DNA of 64,000 bases from Anolis carolinensis. Lineage: Eukaryota. The stretch is taken from assembly GCF_035594765.1 (NCBI RefSeq), contig NC_085844.1:146708107-146772106 (forward strand). The letters run 5' to 3'. Under the pieces are notes generated by a model, which was not told the DNA's origin, made no database searches, and saw nothing but the letters and a program-made list of their open reading frames with translations. A program made the translations under genes and the position numbers. Position 1 is the stretch's first letter; each line of letters begins with the position of its first letter. Shown here piece by piece: positions 6,012 to 55,910 of this stretch.

Positions 6012-6454
6012 CTTAAAAGATTTCCCCGAACTGAATTCTGCTCCCTGGCCAGGCGGTTGCACATATTGAGGCTGAGCCTTTTTGGAGTATCGACTTGTCC
6101 TTCAGGAATGCTGCCTTCTCTTTGCATGCCTGGGGAAATGCCATATTTCTCCTCCAGACAACGCAAGGGAACAGTCCTGTTGATGGGCTGAAATATAATT
6201 GCTCCGCTCTGCTTTGATATCGGCCGGCGGTTTCCTACATAGCACCGAACCAGGCCGGGGATGCTGTCAAAACTTTCGTCTTCAAAGCAGTACTGAACGC
6301 GGCAGTAAGCTTCATTGAGCCTCAAGATGGTTTTATTGATCTTGAAATGCTGAGAGATGTTTTTCCACTGACAAGTAAGGACAAAATTCCCAGGGCTGGA
6401 AAGCGAGTCCCGAATCAAGAAATCTCCATCTCTTTGAATGAGGCTTTCTGCCAC
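6012..6454 (-). CDS. BCAR3: BCAR3 exon encoding the SH2 domain core
   Basis: ttttag|GTG acceptor, AG|gtactg donor, 443 nt; GDFLIRDS (FLVR-type) motif, FDSIPGLVRCYVGNRRPISKQSGAIIFQPINRTVPLRCLEEKY. Confidence 0.97.
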
Positions 6455-12603: not shown

Positions 12604-12750
12604 CTGGCGTGGAATACGTCCGTGATACCAGGCGTGGCTTCGCAGATCTTCACTGCTCATCTGCAGCTCCTCTTCCAACTCTTTCTTCAGTTTTTCTGGG
12701 GAGCTGTCCATTGTCACCTGCCTCTCCATCACCTGCCTCTCCTTGGAAAA
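12604..12750 (-). CDS. BCAR3: BCAR3 exon, pre-SH2 segment and SH2 start (FSKERQVMERQVTMDSSPEKLKKELEEELQMSSEDLRSHAWYHGRIPRQ)
   Basis: Pyrimidine tract plus tcag acceptor, CAG|gtacg donor, 147 nt, phase 0-0; WYHGRIPR SH2 start motif. Confidence 0.96.
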
Positions 12751-21249: not shown

Positions 21250-21900
21250 TCTTGATCTGATCTTGGAAGCTAAGCAGGGTCCAGATTCCTTCCGGAAGAA
21301 ACTGAAAACTTGGATGTTCACAGGTGCCTTCTCATAACTGATAATTAATTGTCCATGCACTTTGCCTAGGCCTTGGCCATTCCATGCACTTTATTACCTT
21401 TAGTCATTCCCATCCCTAGTCATAGAAGAATATGCATTTTCAGATTTCCATTCCCCTTAAAATGGCCCATGGCCCATGCTGCTTGACTACGGATTGGAAT
21501 TACTGTATGTTTTAAGTTATTTTAACTTTTGTAAGATGTGTTATTATATTATGATTTTATTGTGTTACTGTTTTTATTGATGTAATACTGTTTTGGGCTT
21601 GTCCCAGTGTAAGCCACCCCAAGTCCTTCGTGAGATGGNNNNNNNNNNNNNNNNNNNNNNNNNNNNNNNNNNNNNNNNNNNNNNNNNNNNNNNNNNNNNN
21701 NNNNNNNNNNNNNNNNNNNNNNNNNNNNNNNNNNNNNNNNNNNNNNNNNNNNNNNNNNNNNNNNNNNNNNNACCAATGAAAACCAGGTGCAGGGGAAGGA
21801 ACTGATTAAACAAATTCTGTTGTATTCCTTGCCAAAGAAAACCCTGCAAAATACATGGAGTTATTATAAGTCAACAAATGACTTGAAGAAACATACATAT
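21250..21900 (+). mobile_element. 5S rRNA-derived SINE split by an L2 3' end and the assembly gap
   Basis: TCTGATCTTGGAAGCTAAGCAGGGTC (5S-like) at 21256-21281; BovB-like remainder 21772-21900; another 5S-like fragment on minus strand at 37896-37975. Confidence 0.6.
21639..21771. other. assembly gap (133 N)
   Basis: Run of n. Confidence 1.
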
Positions 21901-25435: not shown

Positions 25436-26430
25436 CATATCTGAGGTTCCTCATTCACCAAGAGGTGAAGGCTCATATGGGTGATATGATATGATTCTTC
25501 AGATATCCTGGTCGTGAACCATGTAGGGCTTTATAGCTCACAAAGAAAAGAAAAGTCAAGGGATTGCCTCTGCTGCTGACTCAAATGGCTGCCTCACAAT
25601 GCTAGTGTTATCCCACATGAGAAAATCCAAGTCCACACCATCCTCCATGCTTCACAAGTGTGGCATGGTTTGCAAAGGCACTGTGCTGTGTGTGTTAACT
25701 GGAAAATGAAGTCCATGAAGCCTGCAAAGACCTGGGGATTGATCTGATTCTGTTCTGCTGCTGCAGAACCAGTTTGGACAAATTTTCAGTGTTGACTGAG
25801 TACTGTTGGTGAAGAGAGCAGTGTACTCTGAGAGGCCTTGCTATTTTGAGATCTGTTTGCTGCTGAGAAATGAGGGAGAAGAACCAGGACTGTATTCTTC
25901 TCTGAAGCAGATTTGTGGACTGGGAAAGGACTATTTATGACCGTAGACTTCTGTAAGTGATCAGAGGGATCATTGTAAATACTTTTTTATCTCTTGAAAT
26001 CAGTAAAGTTCCTGTATTGTTGTTCTGCAAATCTGAGTGGCATGCTATTGTTCTGCGGGTGACTCTGGATCTCAGGCATGTAAGAGCTTCCATTTATCAT
26101 CATCAATCCGTAAAAAGTGCATTCCTATTGACAGCAATGAGCCAAAATGTGTGGCTACCAACTTGCCATTATGCTGGCTAGTTCCCCTAACACCCACAAG
26201 TAATTTGGGCAACTCTTTCTGGACCTCTGGGCTGTAAATAGAAAATCCTTGAATTTAATTATACATGACACAGTATAGGCCTGAAAATCCTACATTATAT
26301 TTGTCACATCTATTTTAAAGAGCTGGAAGCCTCCTAAATAGAACCTGATTTCTGCACAAGCCCAGCTGTATTTCTGTACAAAATGATACCCTAGTTTTCC
26401 CCGAAGACGTGCGGATTGAACCAACGGAAA

Positions 26431-26444
26431 GTTGCCATGACAAC
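26431..26444. promoter_or_regulatory. candidate RFX X-box GTTGCCATGACAAC
   Basis: 13 of 14 positions match the palindrome GTTGCCATGGCAAC, in a CpG-retaining non-repeat patch. Confidence 0.4.
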
Positions 26445-26954
26445 CTACAGCACGGTTTAGGTATTAGGGACTCATGCCAAGACAGACAACACAGTCAAGA
26501 CGTGTGGCTCTGATTCCGCTTTGATGGTGAACCCCATGCCTTAAAATTCACACGAACATTTATAGGCCAGGTTAAAAACATGGCTTTGGCAATTTAATAA
26601 ATCCTGAAAACAACCTTAAGTATAATGCATAAGCTGTGCCTGTTAGGGCTCTCTCCATTTATTCTTGCATCTTCCCATGTAGGTTCCTGGGATGCAATTT
26701 CTGGATTTCCCATGTATTCCATAGAGACCTGTTCACGAATGCCTCATGAGTAAAACACCTGTTATGGTGAATGGGTATCCACTTTATGAGCTTTTAGGTC
26801 TTAACAGGTGCTCTCAAGGGATAAACTGAACACCAGTAACTCAGAGCTCGAAAGCAACTATGGGGGATACATTCCCTGACTTTGTGCGAATGCATGAAAC
26901 TGTGAATAACAGCAAACCCTACTGAAATGAGGTTTAGGCCCAAGAATACCGCAG

Positions 26955-27337
26955 AGTCATAGAATCCTGAGTTGGAATAGACCTCGTGGGCCATCCAGTC
27001 CAACCCCCTGCCAAGAAGCTGGAAAATCGCATTCAAAGCACCCCTGACAGATGGCCATCCAGCCTCTGCTTAAATGCCTCCAAAGAAGGAGCCTCCACCA
27101 CCCTTCAAGGCAGAGACTTCCACTGCCATACAGCTCTTACATTTAGGAAGTTCTTCCTAATGTTCAGGTGGAATCTTCTTTCCTCTGGTTTGAAGCCATT
27201 GTTCCGCATCCTAGTCTCCAGGGCAGCAGAAAACAAGTTTGCTCCCTTCTCCCTATGACTTCTCTCATATTTATACATGGCCATCATGTTTCCTCTCAGC
27301 CTTCTCTTCTGCAGGCTAAACATGCCCAGCTCTTTAC
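26955..27337 (-). mobile_element. CR1 LINE 3' end
   Basis: ORF2 C-terminus LGMFSLQKRRLRG...RFHLNIRKNFL; ATTCTATG tail. Confidence 0.92.
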
Positions 27338-28020
27338 GCCAAAGTGGAAGACCTAGGAAGTGTCCAGAGAGGACACATTTTTTTGGATGTGGATAAATGA
27401 CACTGCAGAAACCGGTCTGATGGATATGGAAGTACTACTGTAGTGCAAATGACAATAACTAATGTATAACTAGATTACATTATAATTAATTCCACAAGGC
27501 ATAACTTTGCTCCGTTTACAGTCTAATAGTCCCTTTCAAGTTATTCTTATAGTTAAGAATGTGGTGTTACTAAACAATCCAGGAAGAGCATCACATAGTT
27601 CAAAATTTAGCTTTTCATGCTGCTGGCTTCTGCTCTATTGTGGGCATTGGAGCAACAAATAGGTCTATTGGAGGAGGATACCACAGGTCAGCTACCTTGT
27701 GTTTTCTTTTTGAACAAGAGCAATGTCTTTGAACTAAAACTGATTGCTTTTCCAACTGACAGAATTTCCAACAGAGATACAGTAAGTTGTATCCAATATA
27801 TCATTTCACTTTCCAAACTAAGATGAGAAATCAGGAGTGTGCCCCAGACTCAATTACAGTCTCAGACATTCTACTTTTGTACTAAGCCTCTGATACATCT
27901 GAATTAATCATACTAACTGGAATAACACACACATATTCTAGGTTGGCCTAGTGTCCCTTATTATGATCCTTTTTTGAGATCAGAAAGCTTGTCTCTTATA
28001 GAACTAGCAGGTATCACTTA

Positions 28021-28327
28021 GGTAAAAGTAAAGGTTTTCTCCTAACATTAAGTCTAGTCATGTCCTGCACTGAGGGTTGGTGCTCATCTCCGTTTCTAAG
28101 CCGAAGAGCCAGCGTTGTCCGTAGATGCCTCCCAGTTCATGTGGCCAGCATGACTGCATGGAGCGGTACCTATTGATCTACTCACATTTGTATATTTTCA
28201 ACCTGCCAGGTAGGCAGAAGCTGGGGCTAACAGCGGGAGCTTACCCCACTCACTTGATTCGAACTGCTAACCTTTCAGTCAGCAAGTTCAGCAGCTCAAC
28301 AGTTTAACCCGCTGTGCCACCGGGGAC
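28021..28327 (-). mobile_element. Sauria SINE
   Basis: Full layout; TSD tcactta. Confidence 0.9.
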
Positions 28328-28405
28328 TCACTTACTATATTTAAAATCTGGAAGTTTTTATTTGTATATGGAGTGAACAAGATGACAATAATACTATATT
28401 AGGAT

Positions 28406-28701
28406 AAAGGTAAAAGGTTTCCCCTGACGTTAAGTCCAGTCGTGACCGACTCTGGGGGTTGGTGCTCATCTCCATTTCTAAGTTGAAGAGCTGGCGTTGT
28501 CCACAGACATCTCCAAGGTCATGTGGCCGGCATGACTGCATGGAGTGCCATTACCTTCCCGCCATCTACTCACATTTGCATGTTTTCGAACTCCTAGGTT
28601 GGCAGGAGCTGGGGCTAACAGCGCACCCGGGATTTGAACCTGGGACCTTTTGGTCCGCAAGTTCAGCAGCTCAGCGCTTTAACACACTGAGCCATCGGGG
28701 G
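28406..28701 (-). mobile_element. Sauria SINE (adjacent second copy)
   Basis: Full layout. Confidence 0.9.
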
Positions 28702-29887
28702 TAATAAAGACAGAAATGTATGCAATGTGTCATTTATAATTGTGGACAACATATTATTTTACAGAGAAACATAACAGTATGACTAAAAACAATACTTTGA
28801 TTTGTAATTTGGGTAGAAGACAAAGTTATTAATTTTCTGACTCTCAACTCAGCATATCACAAATTTCAACTGTTTATTACTGTTGTCTTGAAAATCTGAC
28901 AACACTCACATGGATTGCACTATACTACATCCTATATTGCACTAATTTATACTGTACTATACTATGCATATTATACAGTGCTAACTATGAGTATTATTTG
29001 ATATAAGATTTTGAGTTATAGCTAACTAGGATTACTCTCAGAATAATAATTTGAAGATATATATGCAAATTGGGGTTATGAGAGTGTGCAGGTAGCACTG
29101 ATGGAGATGCGACACTATCATTATGAAAACAGGAGACTGGAAAGGCAATTCACAGGGAAGGAAAGAAGGAAGGAAGATACTTTATTAGCTGCATGCCCCT
29201 GCTTTCTTAATAAAAATTATATCTGGTCAGGGACACTTAGGGCTGATAGATTTTGATGGAAAGTTTTGAACTTTTACTAATAAAATGGTTCCCACATTAT
29301 GTCTATGGGGGTGGGGGGGAGTTAGAGATTCTGTGTAGATCCAAGAAATGTCTTTTTTAGGAATTGCTTTTAAAATATAGGTTGTAACAGCACTGTGTTT
29401 TCTCTATGAAAAGGTCATAAGAGTATTTTTAACCACTGCATATCACTTCCAGTTTTCCCTGAGGAAGAGAAGAGACGATTGAAAATATTTTGGGTAACCT
29501 GATAAACAAACCGGGGGGGGGGGGGGGGGCTACCAATAGGACCTCAGCCTTATTTTTCTTTGGGCACCCCCTTCATTTTCTATGCTATTTTGCCTGAGCA
29601 GACAATCTACATTTTAAATAAAGATGCCTGAATCCAATCTCTGTGAATTTTCATATACACTCCATTGATGCACATCTCTTACTCCAGCGTGGGGAAAACA
29701 ATTGTTTTCCTGCTTTCATATTTCCCAAATGATCCAATGCCTCAAAACAATATGCATAATTTGAAAGAAAACAAGGACTGAAACATGAATATGAAAGTGT
29801 GTATTTTCACTCAAAATAGAATTTCAAATGAATGCAGAAATCAGGAAGAATAGACAATCAGGTAAGTCCATATAGTAAGTAACATAT

Positions 29888-30192
29888 GTTAAACCGCTGA
29901 GCTGCTGAACCTGCTGACTGAAAGGTTGGCAGTTCAAATCTGGGGAGCAGGGTGAGCTCCCACTGTTAGGCCCAGCTTCTGCCAACTTAGCAGTTCGAAA
30001 ACATTCAAATCTGAGTAGATCAATAGGTAGCGCTCTGACAGGAAATTAACAGCACTCCATGTAGTCATGCCGGCCACATGACATAGGAGGCATCTACAGA
30101 CAACACCAGCTCTTCGGCTTAGAAATAGAGATGAGCACCAACCCCCAGAGTCAGGCATGACTAGACTTAATGTCAGGGGAAAACCTTTACCT
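29888..30192 (+). mobile_element. Sauria SINE, slightly 5' truncated
   Basis: Core and tail present. Confidence 0.9.
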
Positions 30193-30460
30193 ATACATTC
30201 TCTCCAGGAATGATGAGGTATTTTCAGTGTCTAGAGAATGGAGTTCATGTTGGCATACATGGGATTTCCCCATAGTTTACAACAATCTTGTGAGTAAGAT
30301 CAGTCTAGGTTTTTTCACCAAAAGTGGTCCAGAAATCAGCCAATGAGTTTTGTAGCTCAGTGTTGCTTTGAATGCAGGTCTCCCCTGCCAAAGTTTGACA
30401 GTTTTATCAATGGCATCACACCAGCCACACCTAATAGCACAAAAAGCTGATTTCTAAGTT

Positions 30461-30735
30461 TTTTAAAATCATGTCAGAAGCGACTTGGGAATTTACTGCA
30501 AGTTGCTTCTAGTATGAGAGAATCGACCATCTACAAAGAAGTTGCCCAGGGTATGCTCAGATGTGTTACCATCCTGCTGGGAGGCTTCTCTCATGTCCCC
30601 GCAAGCTAGAGTTGACAGATGGGAGCTCACCCTGTCTCGGAGATTCGAACCAGTAACCTACAGGTCAACAACCCAACCTTCAGGTCAGCAGTTCAGCTGG
30701 TACAAGGGTTTAACCCATTGCCCCACCGTGGCTCC
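30461..30735 (-). mobile_element. AnolisSINE2-type SINE
   Basis: Full layout; about 90 bp downstream of the alternative-exon donor. Confidence 0.85.
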
Positions 30736-30822
30736 AATTTCTAAGTAAAGCATGGGTTGCCCAAAAGGCAACTTATTCAGATTCACTACAACCTGACTTG
30801 GGGTACATTAAGGACCACCTAC

Positions 30823-30906
30823 CTTCACACCAATAATGGTCTTGCGATGGTAAAAACAGCAGAGAAAAGCTATGAGTGTCTGAAGAGCATTGCGATCCTT
30901 AGGCAT
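30823..30906 (-). CDS. BCAR3: BCAR3 alternative first coding exon, MPKDRNALQTLIAFLCCFYHRKTIIGVK
   Basis: gaaaATG (A at -3), 28 open codons, donor AAG|gtaggt in phase 0; resembles the recalled short-isoform N-terminus of human BCAR3 (MPKECSAFHALSAALCCFYHRKSFIGVK). Confidence 0.88.
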
Positions 30907-31260
30907 TTTCCGAATCTTTGTCCCAGGGACCAACAACCTGTTTCAGAAAGCAAGGCAAATGGCTCCTTCCCAGCTACTTTCCAAAGCTCCCACTGAGCTC
31001 TTGTTTTTAGCTTAGCTGCTGCCTGCGGTGACTTCTATACTTGCCTCCCCCTGGCAATACTTTTAATCCCAGGCAGTTTCCTCAGTGAAAGTTGATCCTG
31101 TCATCTGGACATCTTTTGCTTGCTTCCATCTAGCAGGGATCAGTATCCTCATGGGATTGCATGCAGCCTGCCAATGAAATCCTAACCCTCGAAGAGAGAG
31201 AGTCTCTTTTCTAGTCGGGAATCCCCGAGATTAAACAAATACAACTACACACATCCTGGT
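30907..31260 (-). promoter_or_regulatory. probable 5' UTR and proximal promoter of the short BCAR3 isoform
   Basis: Repeat-free, GC-richer sequence directly upstream of the alternative ATG; start site not locatable from sequence. Confidence 0.45.
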
Positions 31261-31267
31261 CGAATTA

Positions 31268-31568
31268 CACTATGTAGCAAAATGTGAACAATTTTCTGTC
31301 CCTGGTTTGAAAGCGTTATCCTTATTTAATTGTTTGGTACTTAATTTGAAAGTAGTTGTTAGACTTCAGAAACTTGGTTTTTGTGGCTGCCACAAACTAT
31401 GTTGACTTGATTGAGACCTATGAGATATTCATTGGAAAAATTATAGCAAAATGTGCTCCAGAAAAAAGAAAGTTTTTGCAGTTTAATAAATATTTTCCAT
31501 GTTTTTATGATAGAACCAATTAGGAAATTGCAGTTATAACCCAGAAACAAAAATCATGTTATATAGTG
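31268..31568. mobile_element. non-autonomous DNA transposon, Chapaev3/CACTA-like
   Basis: TIR CACTATGTAGCA...TGTTATATAGTG; 3-bp flanks tta/cta. Confidence 0.65.
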
Positions 31569-32429
31569 CTATTTATTTATTTATTTATTTATACCCTGCC
31601 TTTCTCCCCATGGGGACTCAAGGCAGCTCACAACCACACACTTTGGTCCCCATTGAAAACAAATCAAATACAAAAATAAAATAGTACTGTGTAGGTTAGG
31701 TTAAAATACAACCAAGATATAATAAATACAATTAAAATGCATTTAAAACACACACATTTTCCCTGCCCAGATCCCGTCCACAACCTTCCCAGTCTAACTA
31801 AAAGCATCACCTTTTTCTTAACCGCACCATGTAGTAGCAGAGTCATTGGCCCCCAAACAGGCTCCTCAGCCCAGATGCTGCTCTCCAGCCACAGAATATG
31901 AATAATATCCATGCTTACATCAGCGGCACTGCTAAGTATGTAACTGATAAAGGTGAGAGGGTGGGAGGAGAGGGGACATGAAGGAAATAACTGCCTGACA
32001 CTGGGATACATGTCCGTGTTCCTCCGCATAATCAAAGATGACGTTATCTTTTAACGTACAGGTAACCAAGGATAGCAGCATCAAGACACTGTTTGTTTTG
32101 AATTAAGAAGCCACTGGCAACCTGCCATGGAACAACACGGAGAGGCCAGTGACATCCTCCTGGGCTGCTCTTTGCGTCACAGTAGTAAACACAAGCCTTA
32201 TGCTTTTTAATTAAAAGATCAGCCAGTGAATTTCCAGATCTAGGGCTAGTAGTCCCATACAGCTATTTCAGGCTTCTACTAAGAAATACTTAATGCTTGC
32301 TTCATAAACGTGGAGTGCCAGCAACACTAATGAAAATCCATGGGATTAAAAAAAATCATTTCAGTTACAAAATTTGACAGGAAGGGTAAAGAGTCCCTTT
32401 CAAAAACACGGATTGAGATCAACTCTGTT

Positions 32430-33345
32430 AGAAGGGTTAGAGGGCATAGCCATCAAGTTTGCAGATGACACCAAATTGGGAGGTATAGCTAATACTCCAG
32501 AAGACAGGAGCAGAATTCAAAACTATCTTAACAGATTAGAGCGATGGGCTGAAACTAACAAAATGAACTTCAACAGGGACAAATGCAAGATACTCCACTT
32601 AGGCAGAAAAAAATGAGATGCACAGATACAGAATGGGGGACGCCTGGCTCGACAGCAGTGTGTGTGAAAAAGATCTTGGAGTCCTCGTGGACAGGAAGGT
32701 GAACATGAGCCTACAATGTGATACGGCAGCTAAAAAAGCCAATAGGATTTTGGCCTGCATAAATAGGAGTCTAGTGTCTAGATCCAGGGAAGTCATGTTA
32801 TCCCTCTATTCTGCCTTGGTCAGACCAACCTGGAATACTGTGTCCAATTCTGGGCACCAGACTTGAAGGGAGATGTTGACAAGCTGGAAGGTGTCCAGAG
32901 AAGAGTGACTAAAAAGATCAAGGGTCTGGAGAACAAGCCCTATGAGGAGCGGCTTAAAGAACTGGGCATGTTTAGCCTACAGAAGAGAAGGCTGTGTGGA
33001 GATATGATGATGGCCATGTATAAATATGTGAGGGGAAGTCATAGGGAGGAGGGAGCAAGCTTGCTTTCTGCTGCCTTGGAGACTAGGACATGGAACAATG
33101 GCTTTAAACTACAGGAAAGGAGATTCCACCTGAACATTAGGAAGAACTTCCTCACTGTGAAAGCTGTTCACCAGTGGAACTCTCTGTCCCAGAGTGTGAT
33201 GGAGGCTCCTTCTTCGAAGGCTTTTAAACAGAGGCTGGATGGCCATCTGTCGGGGGTGCTCTGAATGCGATTTTTCTGCTTCTTGGCAGGGGTCTGGAAA
33301 AGATGGCCCACGAGCTCTCTTCCAACTCTATGATTCTATTATTCT
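32430..33345 (+). mobile_element. CR1 LINE, 5'-truncated and frameshifted
   Basis: RT motif KFADDTKLGG, EKDLGVLVD, RFHLNIRKNF; tail ATTCTATGATTCT. Confidence 0.95.
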
Positions 33346-35017
33346 GTCACTTTTAGGTCATACTTTTGTGGTGAAAAAGACCATGTTATGTTATCACATT
33401 TTCAACCTTTCCATCTAATTGTAAGTCCCATTGAAGGATCCATAACATAATGTGCCTAACATAGACAACTTGTGCCTTGGAGATACAGAAACAAAACAAG
33501 ACCAAAAAAAACCCCCAACAACCTAGCCATCTCTGAATGTCTGCAGTAAACAATCCATACTGCAATCTTCAAGGAAACCATCACCACTAAATGTAATTGT
33601 ACAAGTTAATGTGGAAGAAAGTACCATGCAGATTTGAACTACAAGAGCCTCTATTTTATTACAGGGAACCCACAAATAGCAAAGGGGATTCCAGTTGAGT
33701 CTGTTATTATATAGCAATTTGGAAGGGCAGGTAATGAGGAGTTAAGACAACAAAGTGTACCATTTGCATCCCTACTCTTCTATTTTTTTTAATAATTGGA
33801 AACCTGTTCAAGAAGTAGTAAAGATCGAACAGATGCATAATATCTTTTGAATGGTGGCCCTAAGAACCATGCATTTGGAAGCACCAAGGCTCATGCCAAA
33901 AGGACAATTGTTTGATGCAGTTTCGTACCACCTAATATGCTGTTTCTGGTTATGGAAAGTGCGTGAGAAACAGGTGGAGAAAACTCTTGAGTAAGGAGCA
34001 TTAAAGACATCTCAGAGCTATCCACATATTGCAAAGAAAGCATTGTGGTTCAACTCTTTCTCTGCTGCTTCCAGATGGACAGCTCCTGGTGCTATCGAAT
34101 AGGAAGGGATCTTGCAGCTAATCTTTCCTTCCTTAACAGATTGTTGTGGTAAGAAAAAAGATAGCAGGGCAACACAGGAGGTTTAAAATACACTTCTATA
34201 AAAGTTTACATAAGAGGAAGGACGACAACACTCTAAAAGCCAAATTGGGAAGCACTCTTCAACTCAAGATATTGCATATTTCAATGTTCCCCAAGTTAAA
34301 AATATTTGCTCAAAAAAGCTAGTACATCATGAAGAATGATTCTAACATCGGTTTTCTATACTTAAACATAAATATTGCTGGTTTGTTATTTTTAATGTGG
34401 GGAAACATTCTAACATGGAGTTCATTAGCATCAGGAAACAGATGTAATGTGTAATATTCTTGCAAATATGAAAACATTCCAAAGATGAAATTTCCAAAAT
34501 CCAAGCAAATTAACATTAGTGGCTTTTTAAAATTCAGGACTATAAATAGTTTTGTCCAACACAAAATGTTTATTATGAGACAATCATTTAAATAGCTTCA
34601 AGAATGAGGTCAGATATTTATACTTATGAGAAGAACTTTCAAAGTTTAATTTTAGGGATTTAATTTTAGATGAAATCAGACATCCCTTGTGAAACAAATG
34701 AATCAACAACTTGTCTGGGAGGCAGCTAGCCAGCAGATGTTTTATATAAATAGATTCTTTCCTAACAACTTCATCCTATATTTTTGGCAGGACACGTTCT
34801 ATATGACAGCAGTCCACCCTCCAGATGCACAGATTCTGCATTAATGGATTTGATCATCTATGGTTTGAAAATATCCCCTCTCCAAAAAATGAGGGATATT
34901 TTATATAAGGTATGCCAATTTACTTCACCACAGTGTATAAATGGGATATATAATGGCATTTGAGCATCCAAGGATTTTGGTATTTGTGGCCTGACTGGGG
35001 ACTAAACCCTAATAATA

Positions 35018-35772
35018 GGTAAAGATAAAAGTTTCCCCTTGACATTAAGTCTAGTCATGTGTTTAACTAGTGGTGTTCATCTTCATGTCTATGCCAAAGA
35101 GCTGGCATTGTCCATAGACGCCTTCTAGGTCATGTGGCCAGCATGGCATGACTGCATGGAGTGCTGTTACCTTCATGCCAAAGTGGTACCCATTGATTTA
35201 CTCACATTTGAATGTTTTCAAACTACAAGGTTGGCAGAAGCTGGGGCTAAAAATAGGAGCTCACCCCATCCCACGGATTCGAACCGCTGACCTGCAGCTT
35301 AGCGGTTAACCCACTGGTCTCAAGTGCGGCTGGTGGGGACGAGGGAACGAGCCTTCTTGGCAGTGGCCCCCCGGCTCTGGAATGCATTGCCAAAAGAGAT
35401 CAGGCAATCCCCTACATTATCCAATTTCTGTAAGGAACTGAAGACCTGGTGGTGTCGGCAGGTTTTTGAGTAATCATATTGGACTACCGCCGATTTCTGA
35501 GCCTGAATATATTGCACAAGATTTCCCTAGCCTAAAATGATACATTTTAATATATTGGGTTTATGGTTTCTGTCCCCTTGATCTGGTCATGTAAGTGTGA
35601 TTTATTGTTATAATTGTATTATTTTACTTTGTTTAATAATGTGTATTATGTTGTTATGTAATGTTTGTGTTGCTTTTATGACTGTAAACCGCCCTGAGTC
35701 CCATCCGGGAGATAGGGCGGTATATAAATAAAGTTTTATTATTATTATTTATTACTGGGGCACCGCAGCCCC
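35018..35772 (-). mobile_element. Sauria SINE interrupted by an L2 3' end
   Basis: Body 35018-35317; head resumes at 35754. Confidence 0.85.
35318..35753 (+). mobile_element. L2-clade LINE 3' end nested in a Sauria SINE
   Basis: RLVGTRERAFLAVAPRLWNALP; TSD ACTGG. Confidence 0.88.
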
Positions 35773-36170
35773 CCTAATGACACCTGGAACCAAACCCCAA
35801 TGGATACCATAGGACCCAATATATCCGTTTTATTGATAGAGAACACTACACTTGTACAGATCCAAAATTACAATAGTTATTCTGGATGAACTAAATCAAA
35901 TTAGGAAAAATTACACCTAAAATAAAGTACTCTAGTTACACAATTGTTTATAACCATCCTATTGTTTATTTTTTAATTGTTGTTAGATTTCCTGGAGATG
36001 TTTAATGGAAAAATGGACTACAAATAAAACAAAGGTCCAAAACCTGCCGCAAACCGACACTTAAGAAATTGATATTCTTTCTTCACTAGTACTATAAGGA
36101 AATTTTGCTGATGTTTGCAGAAATGATCGTTTGTGAATGTAGCGGAAAAATGGCTCAAGATTATTTATTG

Positions 36171-55870: not shown

Positions 55871-55910
55871 CTTTACATACTCAATAGTTGGGTCTGCCAC
55901 ATTCTGATCC
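55871..55910 (-). CDS. BCAR3: BCAR3 40-nt internal exon, (R)DQNVADPTIEYVK
   Basis: Minus strand tcctttgcag|G GAT CAG AAT GTG GCA GAC CCA ACT ATT GAG TAT GTA AAG|gtatga; resembles human DPHLLDPTVEYVK; phase-0 donor fits the acceptor at 12750; absent from the ORF track. Confidence 0.93.

Follow-up and report, generated by a model that had tools for sequence, protein, structure and literature searches.

BCAR3 (NSP2/AND-34) is a driver of Cas/Src signalling, of cell migration and of resistance to anti-oestrogens. Nearly all work on this adaptor concerns its long form, whose tyrosine Y117 acts both as on-switch and as degron: it is the SOCS6/CUL5 degron and, along with the SH2 domain, it is needed for Cas activation, ruffling and migration. 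A short human form, BCAR3-beta, has been catalogued since 2007. According to the summary given in a 2024 review (PMC11083344, citing Vervoort et al. 2007, Gene 391:161), BCAR3-beta is "initiated at exon 8" and has exons 9-17 in common with the long form, while its N-terminus is unique and the net loss amounts to 91 residues. The same review describes its role as unknown. No other paper mentioning BCAR3-beta was found in a full-text literature search, and the short form appears to be unstudied.

Two described systems are relevant for comparison. As stated in a paper summarising Vervoort 2007, variants of BCAR3 and of SH2D3C (SHEP1/Chat/NSP3) differ in 5′UTR and N-terminus, probably through the use of separate promoters. 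In the SH2D3C variant Chat-H, plasma-membrane association, which T-cell migration requires, is mediated by an N-terminal domain peculiar to this variant. The principle that the choice of N-terminus sets membrane association is thus already established in the NSP family, via a different N-terminus. The second system is the A domain of stathmin-2/3 (SCG10/SCLIP), which has Cys22 and Cys24 within a hydrophobic subdomain beside charged residues. Golgi DHHC3/7/15 palmitoylate this domain, and it suffices to bring GFP to membranes. Here we describe the probable start exon of a short BCAR3 form in Anolis carolinensis. The exon itself is no discovery; new are the evidence of selection on its 28-residue peptide, on the Cys-Cys pair therein and on a block upstream.

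The window, which is the whole 64,000-nt stretch of contig NC_085844.1 analysed here, carries BCAR3 on the minus strand, and all coordinates are window positions. Exons were placed by tblastn with P0054, a spliced, RNA-derived mammalian fragment that differs from the human N-terminus and was used only for this purpose (Table 1). The long form also has a large coding exon for its N-terminal part, which is located beyond the limits of the window. The most 5′ exon placed, ending in IEYVK, is the upstream alternative partner of the acceptor at 12750, which reads ..tttatcag followed by TTTTCC and opens the exon starting with FSKE. These residues begin at position 120 of P0054, and the exon ends before a GTACGT donor. 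A protein word search with the SH2-domain exon returned 53 close relatives, one of them named "breast cancer anti-estrogen resistance protein 3 homolog". Several of these relatives, P0053 for instance, look mammalian and could be of human or near-human origin; they were left out of the analysis. PDB sequence searches retrieved generic SH2 domains only for this exon and no match for the FSKE exon. The lizard FSKE exon contains a 15-nt tandem duplication at 12712-12741 (minus), whose units start with GAGAGGCAGGTGA and encode ERQVM-ERQVT; P0054 is gapped opposite this duplication in the tblastn alignment.

Table 1. Features of the BCAR3 locus, given as positions in the window.
Feature	Position	Strand	Remarks
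Conserved non-coding block, candidate promoter or leader	31072..31190	minus	about 165-285 nt upstream of ATG
Presumed 5′ untranslated leader	30907..31101	minus	195 nt, free of ATG; stop in frame, 12 codons before the start
Coding part of the alternative start exon	30823..30906	minus	ATG + 27 codons; MPKD and Cys16-Cys17-Phe-Tyr invariant
5′ splice site AAG/GTAGGT, phase 0	30817..30822	minus	AAGGTAGGTG identical in five sequences; best donor score in intron
Long-form exon ending ..IEYVK (Y117 site)	55871..55910	minus	40 nt; GTATGA donor; P0054 tblastn
Common downstream exon FSKE..WYHGRIPRQ	12604..12750	minus	phase-0 acceptor at 12750; P0054 tblastn
SH2-domain exon of BCAR3	6012..6454	minus	147 codons; Pfam SH2 E 9e-11; homologues; tblastn
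P0054 residues 105-119 (..LEYVK)	55915-55871	minus	tblastn
P0054 residues 120-162	12750-12604	minus	tblastn
P0054 residues 163-230	6454-6251	minus	tblastn

Between the EYVK and the FSKE exon stretches an intron of 43,120 nt, which houses the 28-codon exon. An earlier note on this DNA had described an ATG with A at -3, 28 codons and a phase-0 GTAGGT donor some 18 kb from the 12750 acceptor. Read on the minus strand, every one of these coordinates and features proved correct. The start ATG occupies 30906-30904 in the context GAAAATGC, and the codons end in ..GVK directly before GTAGGT. Phase 0 at both the 30823 donor and the 12750 acceptor allows an in-frame join over a distance of 18,073 nt. 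The intervening intron contains a 133-N assembly gap at 21639-21771. From ATG to stop the open reading frame comprises just 32 codons (42 from an upstream TTG), and owing to this shortness it is missing from the ORF track. Scans of the 28- and 34-residue peptides against Pfam and of positions 26000-36000 against Rfam yielded no family and no match, respectively.

To judge how often such a pattern arises by chance, we counted comparable reading frames in the same intron. It holds 20 ATG-initiated ORFs of at least 20 codons, which end at 12 distinct donor-like sites. The donor at 30822-30817 ranks first among the donor-like sites of the intron and fits eight of the nine consensus positions. Since about a dozen similar sites are present in one intron, the combination of ATG, reading frame and donor is not significant on its own. 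That the exon is real follows from its conservation across species.

The 32-residue ORF served as query in an exhaustive protein search, which gave five matches, three of which were true (P0002, P0004 and P0005). All three are reading frames predicted from contigs that are unspliced; residues 1-28 are common to them, after which they read through the donor as "VG" and then diverge. The remaining two, P0001 and P0003, were rejected as tandem-repeat proteins with a chance 'LCCLFHR'-like unit. On the DNA level, the exon is carried by the contigs behind the three true matches, L001-L004, which are Logan assemblies of four runs, and by L005, a JGI metagenome contig (Ga0065711_1042883) on which it represents vertebrate host DNA within the metagenome. 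All five contigs display the same donor AAGGTAGGTG and the same start context GAAAATGC as the lizard. The alternative exon is ancient and exists in at least three other vertebrates; the comparison covers two deep lineages, of which one is represented by the lizard and the other by three taxa related to each other. Two further searches were length-limited and thereby blind to full-length short isoforms: a word search with the alignment of the three proteins returned only those three, and the MPKD start was absent from all 53 BCAR3-like fragments retrieved with the SH2 exon.

DNA alignments revealed high similarity from the start context through AAGGTAGGTG that was gone in the intron beyond. Between the lizard and L001/L003, pS amounted to 0.85, which is saturated (14.7 of about 17 synonymous sites differ), and pN to 0.17, giving a pN/pS of ~0.2. 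The third codon position takes 16 of the 26 differences (p=0.003). In the L005 exon (L005:1501-1581) one codon, for the His following CCFY, was lost in frame. Unchanged in all sequences are M1, P2, K3, D4, N6, Q9, L11, I12, A13, C16, C17, F18, Y19, R21, I25, V27 and K28. Thus, CCFY, whose lack of conservation would have spoken against the proposal of the earlier note, is invariant in the lizard and in the compared contigs, and C16 and C17 persist in five sequences drawn from both deep lineages, including the one whose adjoining His codon is lost. All lineages likewise retain the start context, a leader free of ATG and the stop that precedes it in frame.

These patterns bear on the possibility that the region is a regulatory or non-coding transcript element, composed of an intronic promoter or enhancer and an untranslated exon, and that no stable protein is made from the reading frame. 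A conserved non-coding block does adjoin the exon, and an ORF followed by a donor is common by chance. However, the substitutions follow the codons, as the low pN/pS at saturated pS and the excess at third positions demonstrate, the one indel is in frame, and similarity ends exactly at the donor while start context, leader and upstream stop are preserved. We regard a purely non-coding element as improbable. Its substitution pattern gives 30823-30906 the signature of a translated exon under purifying selection and not that of a conserved regulatory DNA element. Purifying selection across lineages with saturated synonymous sites indicates that the peptide does something.

The region upstream of the ATG was compared in the same way. 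The block at 31072-31190 aligned locally with L001/L003 at z values of 5.4-6.8, a score that was reached by 0 of 200 shuffles, and it was recognisable in L005 too. The intron downstream of the exon stayed at chance level (z about 0 against shuffles). A conserved upstream block next to a non-conserved downstream intron fits a candidate intronic promoter or leader, and the exon is likely to be a true first exon. In that case its transcription would be predicted to begin between about 31100 and 30940. A pyrimidine tract with CAG (30940-30938, minus) lies exactly 31 nt before the ATG, and tract and CAG are found at this distance in L001 (about 2967-2969), L003 and L005 (about 1467-1469) as well. 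This candidate conserved 3′ splice site may allow the exon to be used also internally, behind a non-coding leader. Within the conserved block, a GGAA-core, ETS-like motif is present near 31085. The block of the non-lizard contigs contains a donor-like CTG/GTGAGT; the lizard lacks GT at this place.

How does the lizard exon relate to the catalogued short form? FSKE corresponds to residue 120, and replacement of 119 residues by 28 gives a net difference of 91, exactly the figure reported for human BCAR3-beta. The position of the exon fits as well. Both forms share a start exon located between the EYVK and FSKE exons and keep the SH2 domain. The lizard exon differs from human BCAR3-beta in being a squamate orthologue that is known here from genomic sequence alone. 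By gene position and the 91-residue arithmetic, the exon is the one already known from the catalogued isoform. Taken together with the predicted splicing and the loss of residues 1-119, we consider it quite probable that the 84-nt reading frame of the lizard is the orthologue of the start exon defining the short beta form of BCAR3. The earlier note had called it an intronic alternative coding start exon of this gene; this is borne out by the selection at the protein level and by the position relative to the EYVK and FSKE exons, which were located from the sequence itself as well as with tblastn. The human short isoform presumably carries LCCFYHRK, and residue-level identity with the lizard peptide is assumed on this basis. 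The short N-terminus of SH2D3C, which we take to read 'ACCFY' before FSKE, would be a parallel to the lizard peptide; if the two are homologous, the exon is older than the duplication that separated BCAR3 and SH2D3C.

According to the model that we favour, transcription of the short form would start from an intronic promoter just upstream of the exon, for which the 31190-31072 block is a candidate. The donor at 30823 would then be joined to the acceptor at 12750, likewise in phase 0, and none of the coding exons further upstream would be included, so that residues 1-119 of the long form would be replaced by the conserved 28-residue peptide. From the SH2 domain onwards, Cas-binding domain included, the predicted product would be complete. 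The EYVK tyrosine had been assigned to the long form in the earlier note; the long-form exon of the lizard indeed keeps IEYVK, and this residue is the functional Y117 of the literature. It would be missing from the short form because the EYVK exon lies upstream of the start exon of that form. Given the gene structure, the loss of Y117 is certain, and it constitutes the firmest functional inference. A short form of this kind would be expected to escape the SOCS6/CUL5 degradation route and to signal differently.

What the new peptide contributes is less clear-cut. It carries a net charge of +4 and a hydrophobic patch of 13 residues (Kyte-Doolittle maximum of 2.2-2.4 over 11 residues), at the end of which the invariant Cys-Cys pair is flanked by basic residues. 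Typical traits of S-acylated peptides are present: cysteines in a hydrophobic patch beside basic residues, a patch too short for a membrane span and conservation of the cysteines among orthologues. The peptide would bind membranes peripherally and be S-acylated, thereby anchoring the short form. The closest model for such behaviour is the A domain of stathmin-2/3, likewise a short N-terminal domain with two nearby cysteines, a hydrophobic patch and charged neighbours. Its cysteines differ in their C-x-C spacing and lie 22-24 residues in, and the comparison is meant as an analogy with no claim of homology. Among NSP proteins, SH2D3C shares the use of promoter-driven variants differing in 5′UTR and N-terminus. 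In contrast to the 28-residue peptide of short BCAR3, the N-terminus of Chat-H is a long domain.

The same hydrophobic patch raises the question of ER targeting, in which the N-terminus would act as signal peptide or as membrane-spanning signal anchor and bring the protein into the ER membrane or across it. The sequence begins with a basic n-region, MPKDR, followed by about 13 mostly hydrophobic residues. The 19-residue Kyte-Doolittle maximum of 1.1-1.2 stays below the ~1.6 usual for a span, however, and a membrane span was rejected on account of this weak hydropathy. Gln and Thr interrupt the patch, His-Arg-Lys follows it directly, and the lumen of the ER would be no place for an SH2 adaptor whose partner Cas is cytosolic. 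An ER-targeting function is accordingly the least probable of the readings considered, and very improbable in itself.

A far more serious competitor of the lipid anchor accepts translation of the exon and holds that its main effect is subtractive. Residues 1-119, with Y117 and other phosphosites, would be lost, and the peptide would serve, for example, in a contact with another protein or with the SH2 domain of the same molecule, or in stability, its cysteines being free of acyl groups. The loss of Y117 is guaranteed by the gene structure and the importance of this residue has been shown experimentally, both of which suit such a role. Conservation, moreover, spans the entire peptide (MPKD, N6, Q9, LIA, R21, I25, V27 and K28) and goes beyond the cysteines, and full-text literature searches brought up no work that deals with acylation of BCAR3 or SH2D3C or ties their N-termini to palmitoylation. 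On the other hand, an invariant Cys-Cys near the N-terminus, in a hydrophobic patch with basic flanks, is a classic S-acylated context, as in the A domain of stathmin-2/3, and few other conserved roles exist for cytosolic Cys-Cys pairs. We give the subtractive explanation a substantial probability, somewhat below an even one.

S-acylation of the Cys-Cys pair, by analogy with such peptides, is plausible to a similar, tentative degree. In a palmitoyl-enrichment proteome, BCAR3 was listed among the proteins changed after irradiation, with neither site nor isoform; it stands next to unlikely substrates in that table, which is a hint at most. The complete membrane switch, as proposed in the earlier note, is to be taken with slightly more reserve. 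Promoter choice might, with the same reserve, yield a lipid-anchored NSP adaptor without the Y117 degron and activation site, which would keep Cas at membranes outside the control of SOCS6/CUL5. If true, the lipid-anchored short form would be a regulatory layer not described for BCAR3. The lipid anchor is a cheap and easily testable hypothesis that is apparently unpublished.

Finally, we inspected the surroundings of the exon. Contig depth over 28000-33900 was determined from four of 24 runs, none of the 24 being recorded as RNA. Their short contigs behaved as low-pass genomic DNA with repeat pile-ups and displayed neither a splice junction nor a transcript start. One genomic contig, covering 30673-30836, is unspliced across the donor, as DNA would be. 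Very high-copy interspersed repeats at 28000-28790, 29770-30757, 31349-31545 and 32334-33515 bracket the single-copy exon region, and their summed contig depth reaches up to several hundred thousand in these low-pass runs. An origin of the exon by transposon exonisation was rejected, as the contig depth table displays exon and leader as single copy between the high-copy repeats. Two near-identical copies of an interspersed repeat were noticed at about 4254 and about 35668 (plus); both have the same stop-ridden translation, in which CCFY occurs by chance.
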